Of a stretch of DNA of 64,000 nucleotides, positions 57,473 to 64,000 are shown piece after piece. Source of the DNA: Hyaloraphidium curvatum SAG 235-1 (lineage: Eukaryota > Fungi > Monoblepharomycota). Both the position numbers and the translations under genes were made by a program. Each line of letters opens with the position of its first letter. Within the stretch, counting starts at the first letter, position 1. Where the stretch lies: NCBI GenBank assembly GCA_025558095.1, contig JAIVFI010000020.1:124001-188000 (forward strand), in the 5' to 3' direction. The notes under the pieces are model-generated. The model saw only the letters and a program-made list of their open reading frames with translations, ran no database searches and was not told the origin of the DNA.

Positions 57473-59296
57473 ATGTCGGCCGCTGGGACCCTCTCGGTCC
57501 CAATCCCCCCCACGCCCCCGTACCTCCTCATGGCCGCCGTCTCCCTCCTCGTCGGCTCCGTCTTCCTCGTCGCCGTGCTCGCGCTGCAGTTCCCGAACCG
57601 CGCCATCTTCACGCGGAAGCGGACCGACGTGCCCCTCGTCAAGGGCGGGAAGCCCCTCATTGGCAACCTCTACGGCGGCCTGGAGCACCACGGGCGCCGG
57701 CTGGAGCGGGAGTTGGAGCAGGTCAAGGAGTACGGCATCGTCAGGAGGGCGACGGCGTGGCCAATCTTCAGGAAACCGGTCGACGCGCTCATCACGCACC
57801 ACCCGCAGGACGTCCGTGGGTGTTTTTGGGCGGTGTTTGCTCCTCCGTGTTCTCATTGACCCTGCCATTCGCAGAATTCGTGCTCTCGGACCCTTACCTG
57901 TTCATCAAGGATCACGGAAGCGACCCGACCTTCAAGGACATGCTCGGCGACGGAATCTTCATCTCTGACGGCCACGCTTGGGCCTCCAGCCGCAAGATCG
58001 CCTCCAAGCTGTTCACGGTCAAGTCCTTCCGCGACGTCTTCAGCCGCGACTTTGTCGAGGAGTGCGACCACCTCTCGGCGCACCTGCGCAAGGCGGCCGA
58101 CCAGGGCGCCGTCGTCGATCTGCAGGAGCTCCTGCTGAGGTGTACTCTGGACTCTTTCACGCGGTTGGCGTTGGGGAAGGACCCGGCCTGCTTGAGCGGG
58201 GAGGGCAAGGTCGTCGACGGACGGTGAGCTGATCGCCCTGCCGTGGCAGTTACGGCCAAGCTGATCCTCTTGTCGTTGCAGGTACACCCTTCCGCCCAGC
58301 GAGTTCATGACCATGTTCGATCTATTCGTGCTCCTGTGCTCGGTCAGGACCATCGACCCCCTCTGGCGCTTCAGCGAAGTCTTCAACGGCCGCGGCCGGA
58401 TGATCGCCGAGTGCAAGCGCGTCGTCCACGGCTTCGCCTCGGAGGTGATCGCCGAGAAGCGCCGCGCCAACGCCGCCAAGGCGGACCGCGAAAAAGCCGC
58501 AGACGACCGCTTCGACCTGCTTGACCACTTCATGCAGAGCCGCAACGACGACGGCTCGGACCTCACGGACGACCAGCTGCGCGACGCCGTGTCCAACTTC
58601 CTCCTCGCGGGCAGGGACACCACCGCGCAGACCCTGAGCTGGTGCTTCTGGGAGATCGCGCAGCGGCCCGAGGTGGCGGAGAAGCTGCGAGAGGAGGCGC
58701 TGCGCGTGCTCGGGCCCGACGGACCGACGACCTACGAAAGCCTGAAGGATCTGCAGTACACGTACTGCGTGTTCCAGGAGGTGCTGCGGCTGCACAGCAA
58801 CGTGCCCTCGATGGGCAAGATCGCCACCGCGGACACTGTCCTCCCCGGTACCGGGACGAAGGTCTATGCGGGGCAGGAGGTGAACTACTCGACCTTCGCC
58901 ATGGGCTACCTGCCCGAGGTCTGGGGCCCCGACGCCGCCGAGTTCCGCCCGGAGAGGTGGATGCTCCCCGGCGGCGGCGTCATGAAGCAAAATACGGTCA
59001 AGCACCCCGTATTCAACAGCGGTCCCCGGCTGTGCCTCGGGATGAACTTTGCGCAGCAGGAGGCGACTGGTGAGCGGCGCTCTGTTCCACTGCCGCTGCG
59101 CATGATTGCTGACCCATTCGCAGTCTTCCTTTCCACGCTCATCCGGAGGTTCAAGTTCACGCTTGTCAACGAGGACGACCCCGAAAAGTGGGGGGCGTGG
59201 AACCCGGATCCGGCCAAGCGGCAAGGCCGGTACACGGAGGCCATCACGCTGGGCCTTCGGAAAGGCGTCGACTTTGCCCTGACCCCTCTGATGTGA
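57473..59296 (+). CDS. Cytochrome P450 (fatty-acid hydroxylase-like), three introns
   Basis: N-terminal TM, LGDGIF, LLAGRDTTA, EVLR (ExxR), FRPERW, FNSGPRLCLG heme loop. Confidence 0.95.
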
Positions 59297-59940
59297 GGAT
59301 CGGCGATGGGCTTATTGGACAGAACCGCTGCGGGCGGGCTCGGGCGATCGGCGGAATGGCAGCCCGTGCGGGGCCGCCAGAAAAAGCAAATACATCGCAT
59401 CCACTTGCTTTGCTGCTTGATCGTGTCCGTCGAGTACTTGCCCGGGACTTTCGTGCGTGCTGATTCTCCCCCTCTGTGCCGGGGCGACATTCGCATGCGC
59501 TCCCGGAACGAGTTTTCCTTCACCGCACAACCCACCACCGCCCGCTCCCCCGGGCCGTCCTCCGCCGCTCCGCCGCCGCCTCGCTCGCGCGCGCCACCGG
59601 TCCCGCCGTCCGCCGCCGCGCTCCGCAGCCGCCCCGCCGCACCGCGCCCCGTGAGTGCCGCCGCCGGCCGGCCGCCCGCCGAAAGCGGGATCCGCGCCTC
59701 GGCCGCCGTCTCCGCGCTGCGACGACGATTCTAACAAGCGCCGCCTCGCCCATCCCGCCCCCCGTCGCCCGCTGCCGTGTGTTGTGCCGGTGCTTCCCCG
59801 CCGCCGCCCTCCCGCCCCGCTGCCCGCCCGCCGCGCACCGCGCCGGAACGCATTTCGCGCCGACCATCGCGCCTGGCCGCTGTTTTCATCGCGCCGCGCC
59901 GGCACGGCCCACAGGTGCGCCTTATCAGACGACTAGCCTG

Positions 59941-59973
59941 CTTTGAACGACCCGTGCGCCGGGGCGTTCAAAG
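59941..59973 (+). promoter_or_regulatory. Stem-loop in the SPE2 upstream region, 1 nt before a tiny uORF
   Basis: ctttgaacg-a-cccg tgcgc cggg-g-cgttcaaag: 13 bp with one mismatch. Confidence 0.6.
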
Positions 59974-59974
59974 T

Positions 59975-59992
59975 ATGAATAGTCGCCTTTGA
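59975..59992 (+). promoter_or_regulatory. Tiny uORF MNSRL* upstream of SPE2
   Basis: ATG AAT AGT CGC CTT TGA; could instead lie inside an intron that starts at 59915. Confidence 0.4.
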
Positions 59993-60100
59993 TTTCGACT
60001 CCGAAACTCGCAGTTTTGCCTACTCCAGCCAGGTGCGTTGGGCGGTGCCGTGTGGTTGCGCAAGCGAGGACTGACCGAGCCGTCCACCTCACCAGCTCGT

Positions 60101-60365
60101 ATGCCTTCTCCGCTCACCTCGGACTATTCTTTTCCTTACGACAGTGTAAAGGACATCCTCTACCGGTGCGGCGATGCGCAGGGCTTTGCTGAAGGCCTCG
60201 CTAACCTCTTTCTTGCGCAGCGTACACTTCGCGGACCACTACAGGTGACAAGCCCAAAGGCAGACCCCTTTGCGCTTGCCAGCGACAGACCACAGCTTTT
60301 GGCTGTGCACCGAACCCCGAAGGAACCACCTTAACCCGACCGGCCGTCGGCTGAAACCGACGTAA
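60101..60365 (+). promoter_or_regulatory. Predicted spliced 52-aa uORF in the AdoMetDC leader
   Basis: Exons 60101-60165, 60221-60244 and 60296-60365 give MPSPLTSDYSFPYDSVKDILYRVHFADHYSFWLCTEPRRNHLNPTGRRLKPT*, ending 57 nt before the SPE2 ATG. Confidence 0.65.
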
Positions 60366-60422
60366 AGCCACCACCGAACACTCCTCGCCGCATTCGATCC
60401 CCCGGTCACCGAGGGATACCGA

Positions 60423-62064
60423 ATGCTGGTGAAAGTCCCTCCCTTCCAGCCTTCGGGCCCTCCCAGCGATGTCGTTGTGAACGACGCCTCCGCGGCCGCT
60501 GATGCGGCCGACTCCCACGCCCCCAACTACGTCACGGCGTCGAGCTCCGGCTTTGAGGGGCCCGAGAAGCTCCTCGAGCTGTGGTTCTACCCCAACGCCG
60601 AAGACTGCGGCTACGACCCCACGGACCCGACCAGCACGCACACCCATGGCGACTGCGGCCTGCGCAAGGTCGCGCGCCCCGTCTGGGAGGACATGCTGGA
60701 CCTCGTGCACTGCAAGGTCCTCAGCGTCATCTCGAACGAGCACATGGACGCGTACCTGCTCTCGGAATCCTCCATGTTCGTGCACTCGCACAAGCTGATC
60801 CTCAAGACGTGCGGGACGACGACGCTGCTGCACGCCATCCCGCGCATCCTCGAGATCGCGCACAAGATGTGCGGGCTCACCTACGTCGACTCGTGTTTCT
60901 ACTCGCGCAAGAGCTTCATGTTCCCGGACAAGCAGACGTGGCCGCACGGCTCGTGGGCCGACGAGGTCAAGTACCTGGACCTCATCTTCAACCGCGGCCA
61001 CTTCCACACCTCGGCCTACATCGTCGGCAAGACCAACGACGACCACTGGAACCTCTACATCGCCACGCCCAAGTACTCCAAGGAGGACGAGGGCCGCACG
61101 CCCGAGGAGATCATGGACCTCGACGACGAGGAGGAGGAAAAGATCGACGCCGAGATGGACCGCATGTACCAGGACGACATCACGCTCGAGGTGCTCATGA
61201 CGGATCTGAACCCCGAGAAGATGAAGATGTTCTACAGCAAGGGCGAGGGCGACGACGGGCCCAGGGTCTACGTGGGTGTTTCCCTCTCGCATGGTCGCTG
61301 ACCGAATGCTTACTTTGCATGCGCAGCACGAGACGGGCATGGACGAGATCTACCCGCACTCGGTGGTCGACAGCTTCCTCTTCGACCCATGCGGCTTCTC
61401 GCTCAACGGCATGCTCGGCCCGTACTACTGGACCGTGCACGTGACACCCGAGGACCACTGCTCGTACGCCTCGCTCGAGTCCAACATCCCCATCACGGCC
61501 ATCGGCAAGGCGCCCGACTCGGAGCACGACCTGTACGGGTCGTACGAGGAGGTCGTGCGCAAGGTCGTCGAGGTCTTCGAGCCGGGCAAGTTCACGTGCA
61601 CGCTCTTCAGCCGCAAGCCCGACGAGCTCACGCGCGAGGAGTCCGACTCGGAGTCGGTGCAGTCGACCAACAGCGGCGGGTCCGGCGGCGGCACGCCCGT
61701 CATCACCGGCACCGTCACCCCGGCGTCGCAGGCCACCGTCGGCGGCAAGCCCGAGCGCGCCCTGTCGCCGGCCCGCAGCCGCGCCAGCAGCGCCGGTTCC
61801 AACGCGCGTTCGGTGCTCTCCCTCGACCCCATCATCGCGCAGGAGCACGCTCGCATGCTGCTGTCGTCCAAGACGGTCGTGGAAGGCTTCAGGCGCCGCG
61901 ACCGGATCGTATTCGACCTCGGCCGGTGGGACCTGGTGTTCTCGCAGTTTGCGCTGGGCAAGAAGCATCTCGCGGCGCGCAAGCCCATCGCGAACGGCAC
62001 GGCCAACGGGCTCAAGGTCCCCGGGGACAAGGACGGCGACGGGATCCCCGATCGCAAGAAGTGA
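60423..62064 (+). CDS. SPE2: S-adenosylmethionine decarboxylase proenzyme, intron 61272-61326
   Basis: FEGPEKLLELWF, DAYLLSESSMFV (autocleavage E|S), LILKTCGTTTLL, YSRKSFMFP, FDPCGFSLNG, WTVHVTPE..SYAS. Confidence 0.97.
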
Positions 62065-62226
62065 CTTTGACATTCCTGCACTTTTGTGCACCTTTGGTGG
62101 AGGGGGGATTCGCGGCCTCAGCCGCGGATGTGGAGAGGGAAGCACGGATATTCTCTCGCGGCGCGCGCGTATGCGCCGTTTCAGTGATATGGGTCTTGTA
62201 CGGGTGAGGGCAGGGTGCCCCGCGGT

Positions 62227-63903
62227 TCAAAGCCGCCAAAAATACAAGAGAGTGACAAAGGCTACAGAAATCGAGCTCCAAGAAGGCGTCCGTGCGTGCG
62301 CCGAGGCGAGCTTGCGCCGGCCGTCGGCCTCGCTCCACGATTCGATGGTGAAGAGCTGCCCGACCGCCTCGACCAGCTCCTCTTCGGTCCGATCGCCCCG
62401 CTGCGCCGTCCCCACGAACGCTGCCTGCCGGCCCCAGATCCTCACCGCGTACCTCGAGCTGCTGGGCAGCCCGCTGGGCACCTTCCAGGCCGCCTCCAGC
62501 CTGGTGTTTTCGACGCCGGCCTCGATCGTCGCCACAAGGGTGGATGCGAGATCGTAGCAATGCAGCTCGACGGTGTAAGACTCCAGCACGGCGTTTCTCA
62601 CGGTCCATTCCACGCTCGCGGGGAGGGATTTGGTCCATTTGTCTTCGGAAGATGGACCGCGGATGAGGATGAGGGGGTTCCGGAAAGAGGCCGAGGGCCA
62701 GGGGTTCGCGGTGCACGCCCAGAGGAGGCGGGAGGTGCCGTCGGCGGGCGATCCGTCACGGCGATGTAGAGGAAAGCCCCAGATGCGGAGAAAGTGGAAG
62801 GTTCCGGCTTCGAGGTCCGGAGGAAGCGGGATCGAGGCGGAGGTGCGCGTCATTGGCTGATCCCGCGCAAGGGGAATGCCGAGGAAGCAAGGTGCGGAAG
62901 CGTTGGAGCAATGGATATCCAGGTTCCACGAAGAGAGTGGGGTGCCTCGGTAGCTGAAGGAAACATGGAGTTCCGCACCCGGGATGAGCTCGTTGGACGG
63001 TGACGGGGACTGGAGGCGGAAGCTCGATGTCGACGGCGGCCGGGAAATGCAAAAAGGGTCGCTGGTGGCATTGACAAGCTGGTCCGGCACTCCAGTCCTC
63101 TCGAAGTCCTGCTCAGACATTCCGCTGACCCGATAGACGTAGTGACATCCTTCGGGCAGGGTGAACGGAATGCTCCAGTGCACCTCTGTCGTTCCCGGGC
63201 TTTGGTTTTCGGCAACCAAGATCCTCTGCAGATCAGTCTCGCTTTGGCTACCGGAAATCTGCCCGCGCGAAACCGGCCTGAGGTCCAGCAGTTCGACCGT
63301 CAAGGGCAGCAGGGCGCCCCAACCCGCCGCATCGAGTTCGACCCGGGCAACGGAGCCGGCGACGACCGGTCGCTCGGGAGCCGCCACCGAGAGGCCGCCA
63401 ATGGCAAAGTACTGCTCGCTGAGCGCGAACCGCGGTTTCGAGCCGTTCCCGGGGAAGGCAAGCAGCCGAAGGTAGTAGACCTTGGCGGGCTCCAAGTGGG
63501 GGACTGTCCACAGGAACGAGTCCGAATCCCCGGGCAGCCCGTTGGCGACACGAACCAGCGGGCGAGATTTGTTTGCCGCCGAAAAGAGGTCCAGCTGGAA
63601 CGACGCCGCGGAAAGAAAGGGCGGCGCCGCCCAACGGACCTCGGCGGCGGCACCGGCAAAGAGCACCGCGTCCGCCGGCGGCGCCAGCACAGAGAGCTCG
63701 TGCACCGGTGGCCGCATGCGAATCTGAGAGTCATGTTTCCTACCGGGCGCCGGCCGCAGAGGGTCCACCGCCTCGGCCGGGTACAGATGCGCTGCGACGG
63801 AGCGGGCGACGCGCACGGCTGTCCGCTCGGCCCCGCCGCCCGAGTAGAAGGCCCATGCCGCGACGCAGAGCAGGAGCACAAAGATTCTGAACGAATTCAG
63901 CAT
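62227..63903 (-). CDS. Cell-surface protein with about 4 Kre9/Ser-Thr-GPI-like beta-sandwich repeats and a hydrophobic C-terminus
   Basis: N-terminal hydrophobic MLNSFRIFVLLLCVAAWAFY; recurring W.VP..L....Y.LR and S..F.I units; C-terminal ISVAFVTLLYFWRL. Confidence 0.65.
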   Translation of the reverse strand: MLNSFRIFVLLLCVAAWAFYSGGGAERTAVRVARSVAAHLYPAEAVDPLRPAPGRKHDSQIRMRPPVHELSVLAPPADAVLFAGAAAEVRWAAPPFLSAASFQLDLFSAANKSRPLVRVANGLPGDSDSFLWTVPHLEPAKVYYLRLLAFPGNGSKPRFALSEQYFAIGGLSVAAPERPVVAGSVARVELDAAGWGALLPLTVELLDLRPVSRGQISGSQSETDLQRILVAENQSPGTTEVHWSIPFTLPEGCHYVYRVSGMSEQDFERTGVPDQLVNATSDPFCISRPPSTSSFRLQSPSPSNELIPGAELHVSFSYRGTPLSSWNLDIHCSNASAPCFLGIPLARDQPMTRTSASIPLPPDLEAGTFHFLRIWGFPLHRRDGSPADGTSRLLWACTANPWPSASFRNPLILIRGPSSEDKWTKSLPASVEWTVRNAVLESYTVELHCYDLASTLVATIEAGVENTRLEAAWKVPSGLPSSSRYAVRIWGRQAAFVGTAQRGDRTEEELVEAVGQLFTIESWSEADGRRKLASAHARTPSWSSISVAFVTLLYFWRL

Positions 63904-64000
63904 GGTCGCTGGTCGGAGAAGGTGACAGAGGGGGAGGAGCTCATCCGGAATTCGAGGCCGTTGGCCGGTTCGTAGTCCATTCTTACACAAGCAAATCCCA

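Follow-up and report, generated by a model that had tools for sequence, protein, structure and literature searches.

S-adenosylmethionine decarboxylase (AdoMetDC) catalyses the committed step of spermidine and spermine synthesis, and its mRNA serves as a textbook example of small-molecule sensing by a nascent peptide. In mammals the AMD1 leader contains the MAGDIS uORF, which is AUG-started, cap-proximal, six codons long and free of proline. Another mRNA of the polyamine pathway, that of antizyme, is decoded by a polyamine-stimulated +1 frameshift at the stop codon of ORF1. A pair of uORFs, one tiny and one small, was reportedly described on plant AdoMetDC mRNAs by Hanfrey et al. in 2005, and Ivanov et al. 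are said to have described the uCC of antizyme inhibitor and ODC-homolog mRNAs in 2008 and 2018.

The small uORF of the plant AdoMetDC mRNAs is inhibitory; the tiny one overlaps its start and shields it (PMC2811004). AdoMetDC uORFs are known from animals, plants, algae, diatoms and Pezizomycotina and have been judged to have several origins; outside the vertebrates they have a penultimate proline (PMC2811004). In Pezizomycotina the AdoMetDC leader contains two uORFs, a leader intron and an SDC hairpin before the gene (PMC2811004; PMC5640933). The uORF of AZIN1 starts at an AUU that precedes a PPW motif by about 30 codons; at high polyamine levels ribosomes stall on this motif, and the resulting queue feeds back on the weak start (PMC9082881). 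A search of the literature found no paper on AdoMetDC uORFs in chytrids.

The locus analysed here lies in a stretch of 64,000 nucleotides (hereafter, the window), in which two neighbouring ORFs encode AdoMetDC (SPE2), as an initial annotation made from the sequence had recognised. Both coding exons match family PF01536, the first over profile positions 2-199 (E 3e-76) and the second over positions 214-310 (E 7e-31). The closest named AdoMetDC proteins, those of Gonapodya (52-55% identity), Cladochytrium and the Spizellomycetales, are all from chytrids, and thus the guess that the DNA came from an early-diverging fungus fits. Two further relatives have AdoMetDC proteins that are nearer than any of the named ones, at 80% and 60% identity.

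The public RNA run X1 contains 73% of the words sampled from 59400-62200. A transcript contig of 3864 nt from this run aligns to the window from 59921 to past 62200, with three exact GT..AG gaps (60033-60095, 60166-60220 and 61272-61326). The last of these gaps restores the AdoMetDC reading frame, demonstrating that the contig is a spliced transcript. The AUG at 60101 and both of the uORFs discussed below therefore lie inside the transcribed AdoMetDC 5' leader. The 5' splice sites used by the gene are GTGCGT, GTGCGG and GTGGGT. All RNA evidence used here consists of assembled contigs, which represent the dominant form of an mRNA, and rare isoforms drop out of such assemblies. The features of the locus are collected in the table. 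The tiny uORF in the first leader exon is not conserved in sequence, and uORFs of 2-6 codons are present at the equivalent position in two relatives, L001 (5 codons) and L002 (6 codons), and in Gonapodya (2 codons).

Features of the AdoMetDC locus and its 5' leader, with positions counted in the window
Feature	Position	Strand	Remarks
Leader exon 1	59921-60032	+	5' end of the transcript contig; the true start site may differ
Tiny AUG uORF, 5 codons	59975-59992	+	In leader exon 1
Alternative candidate start of uORF-B, UUG	60016-60018	+	In frame; 22 nt before AUG 60101 in the mature mRNA
Leader intron, 63 nt	60033-60095	+	GT..AG; spliced in the contig; ends 5 nt before AUG 60101
uORF-A, part 1	60101-60165	+	Weak-context AUG (C at -3); 21 codons + 2 nt; ATGC start in 9/9 leaders
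Intron within uORF-A, 55 nt	60166-60220	+	GT..AG; skipped in the contig; absent from L001 and L002
uORF-A, part 2	60221-60248	+	To stop TGA 60246-60248; 30 codons overall
uORF-B, conserved core	60245-60334	+	GUG 60245 (candidate start) to TAA 60332-60334; -1 frame relative to AUG 60101
Second intron of the initial annotation	60245-60295	+	uORF-B coding sequence, no intron: contig continuous, stretch kept in L002, coding conservation
Small predicted hairpin	60345-60362	+	After uORF-B
Predicted hairpin pairing the main AUG	60391-60425	+	CAUUCG with CGAAUG; z -2.2 for 60320-60425
AdoMetDC coding exon 1	60423-61271	+	PF01536 positions 2-199; transcript contig
Intron in the coding region, 55 nt	61272-61326	+	Transcript contig
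AdoMetDC coding exon 2, with stop codon	61327-62064	+	PF01536; transcript contig

Several observations concern the surroundings of the gene. The upstream neighbour (58307-59453) is a cytochrome P450-like ORF with the heme-binding motif FxxGxRxCxG, and its transcript contig ends at 59453. The interval from 59454 to 59920 is very GC- and CCG-rich and has no contig coverage. At the other end, the AdoMetDC contig extends 1757 nt past 62200 into a convergent gene (ORF 62227-63990 on the minus strand, 587 aa), and so the 3' ends of the two mRNAs overlap or abut. The counterpart of the 587-aa protein in L001 has a faint match to Kre9/KNH. In a biofilm metatranscriptome (run X2), a contig of 206 nt matches 60419-60624 with a single difference (T to C at 60500), and that biofilm may harbour the window organism or a close relative of it.

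The initial annotation had placed two introns in the leader, the removal of which would let the AUG at 60101 open a uORF of 52 codons with a KPT-stop end at 60365. Much of the description behind this model is accurate. The AUG is present with C at -3, the three segments together make up an ORF of 52 codons that ends 57 nt before the ATG at 60423, and the first intron (60166-60220) is real, the transcript contig skipping exactly its 55 nt between GT and AG. The second intron is not. Although 60245-60295 also has GT..AG ends, the contig is unbroken from 60221 to 61271, and therefore the dominant mRNA does not encode the 52-aa peptide. The homologous stretch is likewise retained in the transcript contig of L002, and 60245-60295 shows conservation at the amino-acid level in a different reading frame. 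Nor is the 52-aa peptide itself conserved. Its KPT-stop end is absent from both L001 and L002; in L001, at 80% identity, the corresponding frame has no stop ahead of the main AUG and continues past it. The codons of the RRLKPT-stop end sit on the small predicted hairpin that follows uORF-B, for which a similar pairing, GTCGG..CCGAC, is found in L001. Based on the splicing of the contig, the L002 transcript, the frames in L001 and L002 and the coding conservation in another frame, this peptide was rejected, and the model with both introns removed is extremely improbable. What survives is the more general idea of an intron-interrupted uORF opening at AUG 60101 and of a conserved peptide with a stop-adjacent proline. 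The conserved end, however, is PKEPP-stop at 60332-60334, in a frame other than that of AUG 60101. In what follows, the ORF that opens at AUG 60101 is termed uORF-A (frame A) and the ORF with the PKEPP-stop end is termed uORF-B (frame B).

Comparison of the DNA surrounding AdoMetDC orthologs identified an ORF ending in [S/T/A]PKEP[P/S]-stop ahead of the gene in nine chytrid leaders, which belong to related species and whose counts are not independent samples. These are the leaders of the window, L001 (a genomic contig), L002 (an intron-free contig of 1.7 kb, probably a transcript), two Gonapodya, Gaertneriomyces, Spizellomyces, Powellomyces and Rhizophlyctis; splice sites in L003, L004, L009, L010 and L092 were inferred from consensus. 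In the window, the uORF-B core comprises 29 sense codons, reads unbroken through 60245-60295, and ends TPKEPP-stop 88 nt before the main AUG. In L002 the uORF-B stop overlaps the main AUG, and in the other leaders 37 to 149 nt separate the two. The terminus is P-P-stop in 7 species and P-S-stop in 2, so that the penultimate residue is proline in all nine.

The pattern of substitution in uORF-B is that of a translated sequence. In the invariant P-K-E-P codons none of the 8 first and second positions varies among the nine leaders, whereas all 4 third positions do, and the stop codon that follows may be TAA, TAG or TGA. Over the last 12 codons in the nine species pN/pS is 0.51, compared with 0.89 and 2.38 in the other two frames, and entropy at codon positions 1, 2 and 3 is 0.92, 0.49 and 1.38. 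Third-position variation, pN/pS and the mixed stop codons together constitute a coding signature and not one of RNA structure. As judged from these sequence comparisons, a conserved uORF-B peptide is present in the AdoMetDC leader of nine chytrids.

The conserved stretch might instead be an RNA element, or encode a small protein with a function of its own, rather than a translational sensor acting in cis. Hairpins are indeed predicted directly downstream of it, and the core of the one that pairs the main AUG, ATCCCCCGG..GGGAT, is common to the window (60391-60425) and L001 (L001:3968-4003). The three-base periodicity and the occurrence of three different stop codons at a fixed position nevertheless point to translation, and the periodicity contradicts a purely structural RNA element. 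The ORF always precedes the AdoMetDC AUG by 0-150 nt, the leader being free of ATGs, and the Pro-Pro-stop end of the ORF resembles known stall motifs. A scan of 59400-60500 against Rfam (E up to 10) returned no family and a single chance miRNA-like match. A non-coding or independently acting element at this position therefore seems very unlikely.

Outside the nine leaders the peptide was not encountered. Database searches were made with exons or genomic ORFs, and spliced forms served for translation and codon counts. The uORF-B alignment had no match at E up to 10 in a collection of 5.8 billion proteins, a collection that rarely contains ORFs as short as this. A PKEPP ending was seen in 0 of 80 metagenome AdoMetDC loci, most of which come from other fungi or are leaderless. 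No clear uORF-B homolog was found in Cladochytrium (L005), Basidiobolus (L008), a rumen-type transcript (L007) or Phlyctochytrium (L091), which ends REPG-stop. Within L001, a V-K-E-x-P-F-x-L motif occurs in two similar copies at L001:3716-3790. The AUG frame reads one of them and the conserved frame the other, a pattern resembling an out-of-frame duplication of part of the uORF.

After the splicing seen in the transcript contig, the frame of AUG 60101 runs for 30 codons to a TGA at 60246-60248. L001 and L002 have no intron within uORF-A, and their sequences equal the spliced form of the window. uORF-A also appears to encode a conserved peptide, although to an extent that depends on the clade: conservation is strong in the Spizellomycetales and weak in the clade of the window. 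Between Spizellomyces and Powellomyces, there are 15 synonymous and 3 non-synonymous differences in this frame (pN/pS 0.07, with values above 2 in the other frames), while the comparison of the window with L001 gives a pN/pS of 0.35 (1.5-1.7 in the other frames). The length of uORF-A ranges from 14 to 33 codons across species. Its C-terminus is P-R-stop or P-Q-stop in four species and Y-R-stop in the window.

The equivalent of AUG 60101 is out of frame with uORF-B in 7 of the 9 species and always by the same offset, the distance from AUG to stop being 3n+2. This layout is transcript-supported in 2 of these 7 species, the window and L002. L001, which is without the 55-nt intron, matches the spliced form of the window across the junction, and the out-of-frame layout therefore belongs to the mature mRNA. 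At the stop of uORF-A, the frame under selection changes from A to B. An in-frame ATG for frame B is absent in 6 of the 9 species. Gaertneriomyces has an upstream ATG in frame with uORF-B, and in both Gonapodya the inferred splicing fuses the AUG in frame with the conserved part, giving a uORF of 41 codons. If this splicing is correct, the out-of-frame layout is not universal among chytrids. Measured from the uORF-A AUG, the uORF-B stop lies 176, 176, 176 and 173 nt away in one group of leaders, 146, 146 and 143 nt in a second and 123 and 123 nt in a third, the classes being about one ribosome length apart. L001 and L002 have the same total distance, though their uORF-A stops differ by 7 codons.

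The Gonapodya arrangement raises the question of whether the functional unit is a single AUG uORF, made in the window from a minor isoform that joins AUG 60101 in frame to the PKEPP-stop end. Two such isoforms can be written down, since retention of intron 60166-60220 gives 77 open, in-frame codons, and use of an alternative 5' splice site at 60146 (an intron of 75 nt) gives 52; rare isoforms of this kind would be hidden in assembled contigs. However, the intron is missing from L001, L002 and Gaertneriomyces, which are nevertheless out of frame by the same offset; this disfavours a minor isoform as a general mechanism. At the junction, L001 is an exact match to the window's spliced form. In addition, the GTAAAG at 60146 is unlike the 5' splice sites that the gene uses, and upstream of the uORF-A stop it is frame A, not frame B, that is under selection. 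We consider a single, alternatively spliced AUG uORF unlikely.

Alternatively, the two frames might be joined during translation. In this scheme a programmed -1 (or +2) shift at or near the uORF-A stop would, in most chytrids, produce an A-B fusion arrest peptide in the manner of antizyme, with synthesis rising with polyamines and with the distance from AUG to stall set in ribosome steps of about 30 nt. The leader does share with antizyme a polyamine-pathway mRNA, overlapping frames and a change of the selected frame at a stop codon. That this change falls exactly at the uORF-A stop, that the frame offset is identical in 7 species, that the AUG-to-uORF-B-stop distance is held within the first two classes while the uORF-A stop moves, and that Gonapodya carries the A and B parts fused in frame would all be expected from such a shift. 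The chytrid case differs from antizyme in that neither frame is a protein-coding gene, both being short ORFs of the leader. Moreover, the offset is -1/+2, a direction opposite to that of antizyme. Nor is a shift site conserved: inspection of uORF-A for a shared -1 slippery heptamer gave none, and the codon preceding the stop varies (AGG, GGU, AGA, CGA, CAA), with no re-pairing after a -1 slip by inspection. No stimulatory structure was identified. Recoding, including the polyamine-induced fusion peptide with ribosome-sized spacing, thus appears quite unlikely, and we retain the reading in which uORF-A and uORF-B are translated separately.

If uORF-B is translated on its own, it would have to be entered at a non-AUG codon in most species. 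Between the uORF-A AUG and the main AUG there is not a single ATG in any frame in any of the nine leaders (spans of 148-303 nt), whereas about 21 would be expected in total over these nine spans from base composition. In all 7 out-of-frame species the uORF-A stop overlaps by 2 nt a frame-B near-cognate codon, a coincidence that is partly forced by the letters of the stop itself, as any codon before UGA in this position is near-cognate by construction. The overlapping codons are GUG in the window (60245) and L001, UUG in L002, and AUA in four leaders of the Spizellomycetales and Rhizophlyctis, all with a pyrimidine at -3. Five of the 7 out-of-frame species have a second near-cognate 22 nt ahead of the AUG, with G at -3 in the window, L001, L009 and L010. 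No single near-cognate start codon is conserved in all of the out-of-frame leaders. Ahead of the uORF-A stop, frame B has no greater freedom from stop codons than the third frame, which is equally open in four species, and so the openness of the frame gives no support for an upstream start. The best candidate for the uORF-B start is GUG 60245, 29 codons before the stop, with UUG 60016 as the alternative.

Because the plant tiny/small uORF pair and the AZIN1 uORF fit this anatomy, uORF-B may be read as a rarely entered Pro-Pro-stop staller. On balance, and with moderate confidence, we favour the view that the two overlapping uORFs in the AdoMetDC leader form a polyamine sensor, in which rare non-AUG entry leads into the staller and uORF-A provides a bypass. 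A minority of ribosomes would enter uORF-B at a near-cognate codon. At high polyamine levels eIF5A function would become limiting and termination after Pro-Pro would therefore be slow, and the ribosome stalled on uORF-B, together with the queue behind it, would block access to the AdoMetDC AUG. Ribosomes that initiate at AUG 60101 would pass the uORF-B start while elongating, terminate, and could then reinitiate at the AdoMetDC AUG. In this way uORF-A would offer a bypass comparable to the tiny uORF of plant AdoMetDC mRNAs. Translation of uORF-B, its start codon and its stall are all putative, and the polyamine response of the chytrid leader is predicted by analogy with these better-known mRNAs.

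The likeness to the plant pair is considerable. Both are found on the same gene, both consist of two uORFs in which the end of the first overlaps the start region of the second (in chytrids, its putative start region), and in both the second uORF is a conserved peptide with a stop-adjacent proline, the plant one acting in a sequence-dependent manner. The chytrid first uORF differs from the plant tiny uORF in its length of 14-33 codons and in encoding, in the Spizellomycetales, a conserved peptide of its own. The chytrid second uORF, unlike the plant one, is AUG-less in most species, and the overlap is one of 2 nt with a near-cognate codon. Gonapodya comes closer to plants. Here, a uORF of two codons (ATG TTT TGA; L004:2720-2735 and L003:2680-2695) ends one base before the AUG of the conserved uORF, which closely resembles the plant tiny/small arrangement.

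With the uCC of AZIN1 and ODC-homolog mRNAs, uORF-B shares the conserved but AUG-less reading frame, adjacent prolines at the C-terminus, a polyamine-pathway mRNA and a near-cognate codon that precedes the stall site by about 30 codons, the stall site being putative in chytrids. It differs in that it precedes AdoMetDC instead of an ODC homolog, ends in PP-stop rather than PPW or PS, and is overlapped by an AUG uORF in another frame. A peptide-dependent, polyamine-sensitive termination stall on an AdoMetDC leader, which we infer for chytrids, would also be common to the mammalian MAGDIS uORF, but the sequence of that peptide is unrelated to uORF-B.

A comparison within the fungi is provided by the Pezizomycotina, whose AdoMetDC leaders resemble that of the window in having two uORFs, a leader intron and a hairpin, the last of these predicted in the window. 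Among the 80 metagenome loci, one set of AdoMetDC genes has a Saccharomycotina yeast protein as best named match (42-49% identity) and is probably of Pezizomycotina origin. In the leaders of these ascomycete-like loci, an AUG uORF with a KPR-stop end precedes a second, conserved peptide that ends in RPP-stop (L054:406-498, L041:448-540, L049:450-542, L030:557-649, L073:432-524 and four more). No ATG is found in the RPP-stop loci from the first uORF to the main AUG. The RPP-stop peptide contains an invariant ATT with A at -3, located 16-17 codons before the stop, and the uORF may start at this AUU. This is probably the two-uORF leader that has been studied in Neurospora (PMC5640933). In contrast to the chytrid pair, the two uORFs of the Pezizomycotina-like loci do not overlap and their relative frame varies. 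Alignment of the chytrid and ascomycete peptides with hhalign detected no similarity (probability 0.2%, one aligned column), and thus an analogy is claimed here and not homology.

The chytrid leader unites the dual-uORF layout of plants with the non-AUG, proline-pair uCC of ODC and AZIN1 mRNAs. It offers a testable case of how rare entry at a non-AUG codon, together with a long stall, could serve as an amplifier. The element is present in Spizellomyces punctatus, in which such tests might be made. Taken together, the chytrid and ascomycete-like leaders suggest that a Pro-Pro-stop, eIF5A-dependent sensor on the AdoMetDC mRNA may be widespread in fungi.
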